Positions 41,123 through 50,673 of a DNA stretch of 64,000 bases are shown in pieces. The notes beneath the pieces are model-generated. The model was not told the origin of the DNA. It made no database searches and saw nothing but the letters and a program-made list of their open reading frames with translations. A program made the translations under genes and the position numbers. The stretch lies in contig NC_045732.1 in the NCBI RefSeq assembly GCF_009834535.1, positions 77,810,001-77,874,000 on the forward strand, read 5' to 3'. Position 1 is the stretch's first letter. Every line of letters begins with the position of its first letter. This DNA is from Camelus ferus. Its lineage: Eukaryota.

Positions 41123-43471
<2,349 letters not shown>

Positions 43472-45172: not shown

Positions 45173-45278
45173 TTTTTTTTCATTTTTAATATTTTTATTT
45201 GTTTTTAACGGAGGTACGGGCGATTGAACCCAGGACTTTGTGCGGGCTAAGCATGCACCCCTGAGCTAACCCTCCCCC
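45173..45278 (-). mobile_element. Vic-1-like SINE in the DNASE1L1 3' UTR, same sense as the gene
   Basis: Minus strand GGGGAGGGTTAGCTCAG...GGGTTCAATCGCCCGTACCTCCGTTAAAAACAAATAAAAAT. Confidence 0.85.
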
Positions 45279-45335
45279 CGGGTTTGAGTCCTGAAGGCAG
45301 CATCGCCCAGGGCTGGGCAGCAGGTACGGGTGGGT

Positions 45336-48071
45336 TCAGGCCACCAGGCCCAGCTGTGGGGGCAAGAGTGGCAGCAGCAGCAGCGATGGCAGCAGCACCG
45401 TGGCCAGGCTGAGGCACGGCAGCCTGTGCGCCGCCCGGTTCAGCTCCACCTCCACAGGGTAGTGGTCGCTGATGTTGAGGGCCTGAGGGGGCAGTGGGAC
45501 ACAGCATCAGTCTTGCAGCTGGGGGGCTTCCCTGTGACCCTGTTCTGGCCTCGCCCATTACCTCCTCCTCGGTGAGCCCAAAGCTGCGGGGGAAGTGGAA
45601 GGCAGCTGCGGAGCGCAGCAGGCCCTGGCAGCGCTCCCCGTGCAGTACGATGCGGTCGTAGGTGCAGTGGGTGCTGGCCCGCACTGTCGTGTCCACCCCA
45701 TCCGCAATCGCCCACTGGAAGCCTGACTGCGTCCGGAGGACTAGGGAGTCCAGGCGCTTTTGGGTCAGTGAACCGCAGTCAGCATTGAAGTCCCCAAGCA
45801 GGATCACGTCCTGGAGAGGGAAGCAGAAGTCCGGCCTGACCACCCGGCCATCCTTTCCCCATTCCTCCCAGACAGTCTGCCCAGACGTACTTTGCTTTGC
45901 CAGTGCTGGGAGGCATCCAGAAACACGTCGTACAGGGCATTCAGCTCCATCTCCACAGCCTTCGGAGTGGTGTGCAGCGGGACCAGCACCAGGCTGGGAA
46001 GGACTGCAAGGCCCCAGGGACAGGGGGCTCCCACCTACTCCTGGCCCTTCTCTGCCCAGTCTGCTCTGGGTGACCGAGCCCCCGCTAGGACCAGCCAGAC
46101 CCCCCTTCCCCCCTCTCCTACCCTTGCTGGGCAAAGAGAACTGGCCAACAAAGGGCTCCCGGGCAAAGAGGTCATCCTTATCATCGTACACATAGGAATC
46201 CAGGACCTGCGTCTTGTGAGACCTAGTGGACCAAGGGACAAAAATCAGCGGCCCTGTGTCACAGAATGTGGTTTGCAAGTGCCAACACCAGAGCTGGCAC
46301 TCAGGGAGGGGGCCCTCCATCAGCAGCTCCATTTCATGTGGGCACAGCCTTCCTAGCCTTTCTGTCTAGAACTTAAAAAAAGTTGAGATAATTCACCTAC
46401 TGTAAAATTCACCTGTTTAAAAAGCACAATTCAATGGTGTTCAGTCCACACACAAGGTTGTGCAACCATCACCACAATCAATTTTAGAACATTCTTATCA
46501 CCCTAGAAAGAAACTCACACCCATTAGCAGTCCCCATTCCCCTCCCGCTCCGCCCCTGGAGGCCCCAATCTGTTTCCTGTCTGTAGATTTGCCTATTCTG
46601 GACATTTCATATGAATGGAATCAAATAATATATAGTCTTTGGTATCTGGTTTCTTTCCCTAGGCATAGGTTTTCCAGATTCTTCCATGCTCCAGCATGGC
46701 TCAGTACTTCACTCCTTGTTAGGCTGAATGATATCCCACCGTATGGAGACCACCTTTTGTTTATCCAGTCATCAGCTGATAGACACTAGATGTTTCTGCT
46801 TTGGGCCTGTCAAGAGTGGTGCTGCTGTGAGCATTCCTCTGTGGACGTATCTCTGGTTCCCCCATCACTTAGGAGTGAACTCTAGACATTACATAATTTC
46901 ATCTGTATCTGGAAACAGGTCTCCTTCCACTACTGCCACCCTTGGCGTCTTGATCCTGACTCCCCCGGGCTGTCCTCCCAGGGACTTAGGGCTGTTTCTG
47001 TAAAACCGGCTCTGCCTCTTCCCAGCAGCTGCAGCCAGCCACTCCCCAGGAGGGGGCCGGCCTCGCCCTGAGCCCCAGTGGCTTCCGCAGCAGAGAGGCA
47101 GAGGGGCCCCACATCTGTGCGTGGAGAAGGAAGGCCTTCCGCTGTAGGGACATGTGGGCACCAAAGCCATCTGGGATAGAGAAGGAAGATCCCAGAATAA
47201 AGCCATTGAGGAGGAAAAGGGTGATGAGAAGGTAAGAGCCCCCCTTGGGACAACTGCACCATCTCACACTGGGCCAAGCGCCACGTCTGCCCTGGTCCCT
47301 ACCAGTCCTTACCGGTAGATGTACACATACTTCTCCTTGTATGTGCTGCGCCCCAGCAGGGGACTGCTCAGGGAGCTGTAGGGCCCAGAGTCATCCAATC
47401 TGCCGGGAAAGGGGAATCCAGGATCAGCAGCCCTGTGGTTCTGGGGCTGGGGGCCCAGTTTATACCCACAGAGCCTTCCTCACCGATTGAGCTCTCGAAG
47501 CAGAAGGGGGATGGCACTGCCAGTCGGGTCCACCACCTCCTGGAGCACCATGATGTCACAGCGAGCCAGGATCTGCAGGACACCGGAAAGGCCAGCCCCA
47601 CTCAATGCCAGGCGCCCTGGGAGAGGGGTGGTGCCCCTGGGGAACTGGCACTCTGGCTACAGCCTCAAGAGAGCACTGAGGCTAGAAAGGACCTGGGTTA
47701 AGGCTGGATGCCATCCCCACCACATTGCACCCATTTTTACAGAGGAGGAGACTGAGGCCAACGACGGGGAAGGAATGTGCTCCACACATCCACACCTGTG
47801 TCTCTTGATGTCCTCTCTTCTCTGGGGCATGCCCCTTGTCAGGCAGGGTGAGGGGCTTGGGGTCATGGTCCTTAGGGGCAAAGCTTCCCTCCAGTGATGA
47901 ACCTACCAGAACTAAGGTGTCCATCACAGGCTCCCTGGCCACCTTGGGAAGCGTCAGCCGCTGGGCATTGAAGGCGCAGATGCGAAAGGCCTCAGCCCCA
48001 CTGGCCAAGAGGAGGAGCAGGAGCAGTGCATGGCTGTGTCCGGACTGCTGGAACCCTCCAGAGGAATCCAG
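45336..48071 (-). CDS. DNASE1L1: DNase X / deoxyribonuclease-1-like 1, 316 aa if initiated at CUG 48071
   Basis: Exons 48071-47907 (acceptor 48077), 47572-47484, 47399-47313, 46222-46122, 46003-45891, 45810-45562 and 45482-45336, all GT-AG; 951 nt in total. Signal peptide ...[14 protein letters not shown]|FRICAFN; motifs VLQEV, PLHTTP, GDFNAD, YDRIV and SDHYPVEV; hydrophobic GPI-type C-terminus. Gene identity is certain; the start codon is inferred. Confidence 0.95.
46380..46850 (-). mobile_element. L1M 3' fragment in a DNASE1L1 intron
   Basis: ttgagataattcacctactgtaaaattcacctgtttaaaaagcacaattcaatgg... is a typical antisense L1MB-like 3' end. Confidence 0.8.
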
Positions 48072-48272
48072 GTTGCCCTAGACTGTGGTTCCAGTCAGAC
48101 TCAGTTCTAGTTCCAGAAGGACATGGTAATATGTGACAGAGAAAGTGACACTCACCATGCTGCCCAGCACCAACCTCCCAGAGAGGCCAGCATCACAGAT
48201 GCCCTGCCTTTCTCCCTTGAGGACTGCTTCCAACATCAGCATGTGTGGTTCAAGCTCATTCTTTTTGATCAT

Positions 48273-49090: not shown

Positions 49091-49756
49091 TGTGCGTGAT
49101 GGGGCTCCTCTCTCAAGTCCCACGACCACTGGACCTACTTGTCCATCTTACCAGCTGGAGCCCCATCTTCCTGAGCGTCTCTCTCAGTCTGTCTTTGTCT
49201 TGGGCTCAGCCCGTCGCTGCACTCACTGTTGGTGCTGCTCTTGCTTAGAGACATAAGTCCCTCTACTTCTGTCTGCCTGGTTTTCCCTGGTACCTTGTCA
49301 CCTTTCCCCTTGGGCTGACTTTCTGCCTCCATCAGGCTCTGCATGCCTCTGTCTGGCTCGGTCTCTCTTCTCTTTTCTCCTCTTTGTCTCTGTCATCGTG
49401 TCTCTGTGTATGTCCTTCACTCTCCTGACTGGATTCCATACCCGTTTCTCCCCAGCCACCTGTTCTGTCATTCATGCTAGTTCGGGTCCCCTGCCCTGGT
49501 GCCCTATTCTGGGATGGATGTGGACATTTGGGCAGCCCTGTGCTGGGCACGGCAGGCTGGGAAGCTCTGGGGCCAGGGGTTCCCAGGAGGGCGGAGGGGA
49601 AGAACTAGACAGTGACTGTTCCTAAACTCAGCCCAAAGCCGGTTGGGGCTTCCAACACCAGGCCTTGCCCAGAGCCCTGGGATTCCCTTCCCCTTTCCCC
49701 CCGCCCCCAGGCTGAGGGCAACTTCCTCCTTCTCTCTGTCCAGTGGGCTCCCATAC

Positions 49757-49829
49757 CTGTGCAGACCAGGTTGTCTCCACGCCTGCCTCTGCTGTAAGCG
49801 GATCGCGACACGCCACGGAATCGCTGCGC
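49757..49829 (-). other. Candidate 73-nt non-coding 5' exon of DNASE1L1
   Basis: Polypyrimidine tract with CAG acceptor at 49830 and donor CAG|GTATGG at 49757, in a CpG-rich segment; no transcript evidence. Confidence 0.4.
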
Positions 49830-50673
49830 CTGCTTGGGCAGAGACCAGAGTGAAAAAGAGGAACAGGCTGTCATCCTGACCCATCCGTCCGGGCCAGGCT
49901 GGCCGCCCCACCCTTCCCAGCAGGCAGGCGCGGCCCTGGCTCCGCCCCGACGCCCGCTGGGAGGCCAGGCGCCCTGCCTGGAGACAGACGACCTGCCCGC
50001 CCACCTTCCCACCAGACCCCGCCTTCCGCGGCCTCTAGGACTGGGCACGCCTGGAGGCCCGGCGGGAGGGGGATTTGGGCAGATGACAGACCTGTGAGTC
50101 AGAGTTTGCCTGTGCCAAGGGCGCGCGGCAAGGAGGAGCTGGCGCCCGAGTGCAAACCTCGTTCTGCGCTTTCCCAGGCCCAGCGGTCAGCCCCTGTTCC
50201 CGGTCGCCTCCAGGCAGTATCTGCTGGGGAAGACGCCGGAGCTGGAGCTCGAGCCAGGCATACGGAAGCCCCGCAGCGAGCCTGGGCACCCCCGAGAACA
50301 AGAGCCTTTTCTCCAGGTATTCAGGCCGGGCCTCAGTGTGGCTGCACACTCCCGAGCGCTCTGGATACCCAAAGTGAGCGACCATCCGCGCTGGAACTGA
50401 CCATAGTGGTGGAAGTCAAGGGCGGACTGAAGAACTGTACCCGAGAGGAGATTAGAGAGCGGGCAGCTCAGTGCCCTGTGGGGTCCTATACTGTCGCTGT
50501 TGGGACAAGTGGGGGACTCGGGCGGGGTTTGTGGGCGGGCAATGGGTCTTCACTGGATGGTTGTAGTTCGGTCTTCAGGGCAATGTCCCCGCTGGCAGGA
50601 CCTACACGCTAGTGGATTGGGGGTGGTGATGAGCAGAAGGTCGGAAAAGAGTTTTTAATCAATAAAATTATGC

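Follow-up and report, generated by a model that had tools for sequence, protein, structure and literature searches.

To our knowledge, most mammalian non-AUG starts of the kind collected so far add an N-terminal extension to an isoform that is also started at an AUG codon. A CUG start of the porcine and bovine DNase X was reportedly described by Shiokawa et al. in 2005 (Biochem J 392:511, PMC1316290). DNase X, the product of DNASE1L1, belongs to the DNase I family and is described in the literature as anchored by glycosylphosphatidylinositol (GPI). Both PMC2396638 and PMC9208542 cite that report, which a preliminary description of the sequence studied here had mentioned; the former places the bovine transcript NM_001038634, with a CUG at nucleotide (nt) 185 and with reference to Shiokawa 2005, among validated alternative starts, and its validated mammalian non-AUG starts include those of VEGF, JunD and Sp3. 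A literature search for CUG initiation of DNASE1L1 returned nothing relevant. Here we analyze DNASE1L1 in a stretch of 64,000 nt from Camelus ferus (NC_045732.1, positions 77,810,001 to 77,874,000; the window, numbered from its first letter) and propose, with a probability of about 0.86, that the camel protein is initiated at the CUG codon 48071-48069.

The comparison with the two described cases carries much of the argument. The curated pig precursor (NP_001033721) starts with MDSSGGFQKHTCGH (MDSSGGFQ...), the curated bovine one (NP_001033723) with MHSSGGFQKAIHGH (MHSSGGFQ...), and in the DNA alignment both starts stand in the same CTG column as camel 48071-48069. The camel gene is orthologous to the porcine and bovine ones, has RPL10 downstream as they do, shares with them a deletion after an old ATG and an in-frame stop codon just upstream of the CTG, and would encode the same kind of N-terminal extension, (M)DSSGGFQ..., followed by a leucine core. 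The upstream stop is a TAG 9 nt away in camel, whereas it lies 36 nt away in pig. Two further differences are that the camel gene keeps a downstream methionine in the motif MDTL, which misleads annotators, and that its CUG start is proposed from sequence and RNA contigs, in contrast to the experiments in pig and cattle. The preliminary description had likewise favored a CUG start, and the shared alignment column, the in-frame TAG 9 nt upstream and the lack of an in-frame AUG before MDTL all support it.

On the minus strand of the window DNASE1L1 is intact and expressed. It consists of one exon in the 5' untranslated region (UTR) and seven coding exons, and every intron is of the GT-AG type (Table 1). 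Two camel Logan RNA contigs from different sequencing runs (L002 and L003) match the window in eight blocks at 100% identity, and the mRNA rebuilt from the window exons equals L002 base for base; the extent of exon 1 is a minimum, L002 beginning there. The junction between exons 1 and 2 is found in both of these independent contigs, and pig, deer and horse mRNAs have the same junction; the donor after 47907 reads GTAGGT. The seven coding exons with intact splice sites and the intact catalytic motifs noted from the letters alone were thus recovered. In the alignment to the DNASE1L3 structure 7kiu and to DNase I (E of about 1e-60), which begins at the FRICAF region, the following family blocks, which we take to hold the DNase I catalytic residues, are identical or nearly identical to 7kiu: RICxFN, LQEV (its Glu standing against MEI), PLHTTP, GDFNA, DTTV and SDHxPVE. 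A protein search with the stop-free stretch spanning exon 7 gave DNASE1L1 of Camelus, Vicugna and Sus as top matches and about 150 other mammals besides, all with PF03372. Both contigs encode exactly the NCBI protein of Camelus ferus and C. bactrianus (P0121, 267 amino acids (aa), starting at MDTL).

The leader of this mRNA offers no AUG to the enzyme frame. Its 111 nt in L002 contain no ATG at all, and the first AUG of the mRNA is an out-of-frame one. The preliminary description was wrong in taking the exon to be open from its acceptor: the true acceptor is at 48108-48107, the exon runs from 48106 onward and the in-frame TAG 48080-48078 lies inside it. Apparently the TAG before GGC had been mistaken for the acceptor, an error whose correction works in favor of the CUG conclusion. 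Since this TAG is in the mRNA and in frame, an upstream exon, which that description had considered as a possible source of a start codon, cannot supply an in-frame AUG to this mRNA; both contigs have the TAG 9 nt 5' of the CUG and no in-frame AUG before MDTL. The TAG is also found in alpaca, in the second camel assembly and in dromedary. Between it and the leucine core CTG 48071 is, by reading, the only near-cognate codon (one base off ATG), and its context on the minus strand, GGC AAC CTG GAT, has A at -3 and G at +4, as previously noted.

From the CUG the frame comprises 316 codons up to the stop 45338-45336, the length given before, and passes through the putative leucine-rich signal peptide (...ASGAEA) and FRICAF, reading GCT GAG GCC and then TTT CGC ATC TGC GCC TTC. 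No in-frame AUG precedes the signal peptide, and none precedes MDTL in either the sequence or the mRNA, so that the claim that MDTL is the first one holds. The translation contains a putative signal peptide (leucine core, then AEA followed by F) and a Leu/Pro-rich C-terminal tail that is a putative GPI signal; the DNase I and DNASE1L3 structures align from the mature start (FRICAF, 47987). Exon 1 has a second AAC-CTG-G in a start-like context (49768-49770), which is in frame with the TAG 48078-48080 and would lead an upstream open reading frame (ORF) of 13 codons stopping 6 nt before the main CUG; this CTG reads CCG in pig and hence is not conserved.

The same arrangement was observed in RNA contigs of other artiodactyls. 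In each of the 14 contigs (two from camel, six from pig and six from deer) the CTG stands in the frame of the mature enzyme, with no intervening in-frame ATG and with an in-frame stop 9-36 nt upstream of the CTG, while in four horse contigs the ATG is in frame instead. The AUG-initiated DNASE1L1 genes of other placentals (horse, rhinoceros, carnivores, pangolin, bats) share with camel the exon structure, the junction between exons 1 and 2 and the mature enzyme, and the leader of horse and raccoon dog, including the CTG, is the same as in camel. Unlike in camel, their ATG-CAC start (MHCPAV...) is in frame, and the frame of the CTG is a different and unconstrained one.

The difference is due to a 10-nt gap directly after ATG-CAC-TGC, which all six artiodactyls compared (camel, alpaca, pig, cow, deer and blue whale) have and horse, raccoon dog and pangolin do not; its exact placement within the repeat of leucine codons is alignment-dependent. 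Measured from the old ATG, the Phe codon of the mature start is 54 nt away in horse, 51 nt in raccoon dog and 48 nt in pangolin, all multiples of three. In pig it is 47 nt away, and in the other artiodactyls (camel, alpaca, cow, deer and blue whale) 44 nt, every artiodactyl value leaving a remainder of 2. Pig has lost 7 nt net, having regained one 3-nt leucine codon. The deletion puts the old AUG out of frame and brings the leader CUG into the frame of the enzyme. Outgroup proteins (rhinoceros, cats, mustelids, bats, mole, shrew) start with MH(C/Y/P)PA... or similar; given that, among the species compared, the deletion is confined to artiodactyls and the outgroups are in frame, it is a derived state common to camelids, pigs, ruminants and whales, and the alignments are most simply read as one deletion event in the artiodactyl stem. 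The placement of the frameshift and its CUG rescue at the base of the artiodactyls, which had been suggested from the camel sequence, agrees with this distribution. The CTG is invariant in the six artiodactyls and is present, out of frame, in horse and raccoon dog, so the CUG predates the deletion and was co-opted by it; pangolin has CCG at this position and a stop in that frame.

The disabled ATG (48029-48031) is kept in 6/6 artiodactyls compared, as CAT-GCA (His-Ala) in the new frame. A synonymous CAC would abolish it, but CAC-GCA makes a CpG, and the retention may be explained by this mutational bias. The 24-nt block from the CUG on (CTGGATTCCTCTGGAGGGTTCCAG; window 48069-48092, minus strand) is identical in camel, alpaca, pig, deer and blue whale, and differs by one base in cow and in horse, where it is untranslated leader, by four in raccoon dog and by three in pangolin. 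It can fold as a hairpin, no better than shuffled sequence does.

Translation could proceed as follows. Scanning ribosomes would meet no AUG across the 111 nt of leader covered by the contig, and some of them would initiate at the CUG (A-3, G+4), presumably with initiator Met-tRNA, to yield a 316-aa precursor with a signal peptide of 28 residues. Ribosomes leaking past the CUG would start at the out-of-frame AUG and produce a by-product of 25 residues. Several points weigh against this explanation. We infer the actual initiation at the camel CUG from sequence, and the structure of the camel mRNA comes from two RNA contigs, beside which minor isoforms may exist. The details of the 2005 work on pig and cattle come from its title, its citations and the curated RefSeq starts. 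With 14 residues, the n-region of the predicted signal peptide is long, and it has neither Lys nor Arg. Finally, a hairpin containing the CUG (CUGGA...UCCAG), predicted in camel and deer, has z-scores of -0.75 to +1.1 against shuffles.

This hairpin was rejected as evidence of a structural enhancer, since it is no better than shuffled sequence and the bases that differ in horse and raccoon dog make it weaker, without compensatory changes. No slippery heptamer that could serve programmed frameshifting after a start at the old AUG was seen by eye in 48031-47988, and CUG initiation makes such a mechanism unnecessary. An assembly error behind the frameshift was dismissed because the same sequence occurs in the window, the second camel assembly, dromedary, alpaca and the two RNA contigs.

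To characterize selection on the protein, we calculated the ratio of nonsynonymous to synonymous substitution rates (dN/dS) of the mature protein, which is 0.25-0.33 for all pairs among camel, pig, deer and horse. These values indicate that the DNASE1L1 protein is still constrained by purifying selection. The dN/dS of camel versus alpaca is uninformative, because only six codons differ (four nonsynonymous and two synonymous). In elk, goat, musk deer and blue whale the ORF is devoid of Met codons, which leaves a non-AUG start as the sole possibility there.

An AUG start might be obtained through a 3-nt exon, in which the ATG 48158-48156 is spliced over 78 nt to the GGC at 48077, skipping the TAG and giving MGNLDSS.... 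The deposited dromedary protein KAB1253004.1 (P0001, 319 aa) begins exactly on this ATG, and the following GTGAGT makes a strong donor in camel, dromedary and alpaca. We nevertheless consider this start very unlikely, because in both camel RNA contigs exon 1 continues at 48106 and the TAG is present, the acceptor before 48077 is preceded by a purine-rich stretch without a pyrimidine tract, and ATG followed by GT is not conserved outside camelids (cow, whale and horse have AGGATGA/G). Moreover, the 90%-identity clusters of two camelid queries (P0001 and P0002) contain no RNA-derived MGNLDSS protein, and in our judgement a first exon of 3 nt is what a gene predictor tends to produce when it has to come up with an ATG.

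Automatic annotation in Camelus ferus, C. bactrianus, C. dromedarius and alpaca instead starts the protein at the first in-frame AUG, that of MDTL (codon 50 of the CUG frame), giving a product of 267 aa (for example, XP_010962372). With this start, the protein would lose the putative signal peptide together with 21 residues at the mature N-terminus; these residues align to solved DNase folds and include Asn7 and Cys4, the latter belonging to the C4-C32 pair according to PMC9208542. Lacking the signal peptide and the first residues of the fold, such a product could not be a secreted or GPI-anchored enzyme. The 21 codons ahead of MDTL are conserved, an out-of-frame AUG lies upstream of MDTL, and ruminants and whales have LDTL, several of them without any Met, yet the ORF stays constrained. 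Hence a start at MDTL is highly improbable.

The loss of the canonical start could also mean that the gene is decaying, i.e. that it is a unitary pseudogene in camelids or artiodactyls and that the frame from the CUG is open by coincidence; the four nonsynonymous against two synonymous codons between camel and alpaca would point the same way, were they not too few to judge. The frame is open and the splice sites are intact in six artiodactyl lineages, which by our estimate separated more than 50 million years ago. The sole change in leader length, in pig, is a multiple of three, dN/dS within artiodactyls is the same as against horse, a spliced mRNA is expressed, and the curated entries for pig and cattle are precursor proteins. 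All this makes decay extremely unlikely.

The leucine core (48026 onwards) has several in-frame CUG or UUG codons of its own, and a prokaryote-style ORF caller picks a TTG there (MASGAEA), but initiation at one of them rather than at 48071 is scarcely credible. Proteins started there would have 3 to 13 residues ahead of the cleavage site, in most cases not enough for a signal peptide. The codons have poorer contexts and come no earlier than the out-of-frame AUG, at which ribosomes leaking past the CUG should be caught, and the curated pig and bovine starts are the upstream CUG.

The camelid database models, whether begun at MDTL (267 aa) or at the 3-nt ATG exon, look wrong in the light of the CUG start. 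Other artiodactyl models have unusual N-termini as well: Gnomon models use upstream ATGs in Bos javanicus (330 aa) and Tursiops (373 aa), and cervid, goat and blue-whale models are flagged as partial and begin right after the in-frame stop. We read these models as symptoms of the missing AUG and not as evidence against the CUG. In intron 1 of the camel gene (window 49135-49344, minus strand), an ATG-led ORF of 69 codons is similar to the additional N-terminal part of the Tursiops Gnomon model (P0023; MEPRQAESETKGEGDK...), and we think that it was recruited by predictors in whales to supply an ATG.

The positions of the features are given in Table 1.

Table 1. Features of the DNASE1L1 locus in the window and the basis of their assignment.
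Feature	Position in the window	Strand	Basis and remarks
Exon 1, 5' UTR, no ATG	49757..49832	minus	L002 bases 1-76, 100% match; donor GT 49756-49755
Intronic ATG followed by GTGAGT; 3-nt first coding exon in dromedary model KAB1253004.1	48156..48158	minus	P0001 gene start in dromedary (L030)
Exon 2, first coding exon	47907..48106	minus	Acceptor AG 48108-48107, donor GT 47906-47905
TAG stop in the mRNA, in frame and two codons 5' of the CUG	48078..48080	minus	RNA contigs and genomic sequence
Proposed CUG initiation codon, context AAC CTG G	48069..48071	minus	Orthologous to curated pig and bovine starts
Remaining putative signal peptide: DSSGGFQQSGHSH, Leu-rich core, SGAEA; mature FRICAF from 47987	47988..48068	minus	Translation
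Ancestral ATG-CAC start, out of frame; 25-codon overlapping ORF to TGA	47954..48031	minus	The mRNA has its first AUG here (48031-48029)
Site of the artiodactyl 10-nt deletion; horse has CCCGCTGTGT after ATG-CAC-TGC	48022..48023	minus	Alignments
Exon 3	47484..47572	minus	RNA-contig gene model
Exon 4	47313..47399	minus	RNA-contig gene model
Exon 5	46122..46222	minus	RNA-contig gene model
Exon 6	45891..46003	minus	RNA-contig gene model
Exon 7	45562..45810	minus	RNA-contig gene model
Exon 8: hydrophobic C-terminal tail (putative GPI-signal region), stop 45338-45336, 3' UTR to contig end	45209..45482	minus	RNA-contig gene model

RPL10 (Ribosomal_L16) is located downstream of DNASE1L1 on the opposite strand, tail-to-tail, in the camel, cow, whale, horse and alpaca loci, with an RPL10-like ORF at 42319-42504 of the window; this synteny agrees with the description in PMC9208542. 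The window is 99.8% identical to the second camel assembly (GCA_048773025.1, L001) over 8.4 kb, and the protein that it encodes is exactly P0121 and differs from the dromedary protein by two residues, which points to a two-humped camel or a close relative. At the other end of the gene, a stop-free stretch of 372 codons (45250-46365, minus strand) extends from exon 5 through intron 7 and across exon 8, with exons 5 and 7 in the coding frame and exons 6 and 8 not. In dromedary, the NCBI isoform X1 (P0124, 323 aa) reads through intron 7 in this way after ...LTEEE (VMGEARTG...) and would be without the putative C-terminal GPI-signal tail.

Camelidae are the earliest-branching living artiodactyls. 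A broader scenario, which we regard as doubtful, is that an obligate CUG start arose once in the stem of Artiodactyla, when one 10-nt deletion disabled the AUG and co-opted a CUG of the laurasiatherian leader, and was held through the history of the order, every AUG being purged in several lineages; in that case, the near-invariant block CTGGATTCCTCTGGAGGGTTCCAG would be an element of the leader that governs CUG usage. Before the deletion the CUG could, in this scenario, at most have opened an out-of-frame upstream ORF.

The camel CUG is the orthologue of a published case, and its novelty is therefore modest: a known phenomenon (Shiokawa 2005) is extended to camelids. What is added here are the camelids themselves, the causal deletion common to all artiodactyl lineages compared and a list of gene models that need a CUG start. 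Like the non-AUG starts compiled in PMC2396638, the camel start would be a near-cognate codon in a good context read by scanning ribosomes; unlike in most of them, the CUG would be the only way to a functional DNase X, and some artiodactyl ORFs are without any AUG. DNASE1L1 would thus be a clean natural mammalian case in which a functional protein can be made only from a non-AUG start, and one with a datable cause, a single 10-nt deletion common to camelids, pigs, ruminants and whales. Annotation of the CUG could correct the truncated camelid reference models (267 aa, no signal peptide) and the dromedary model with the 3-nt exon, and could also fix the cervid, bovid and whale models that are partial or have N-terminal extensions suspected to be spurious. 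With the same leader in frame in artiodactyls but not in horse, these genes may serve as a test set for the rules of CUG recognition.

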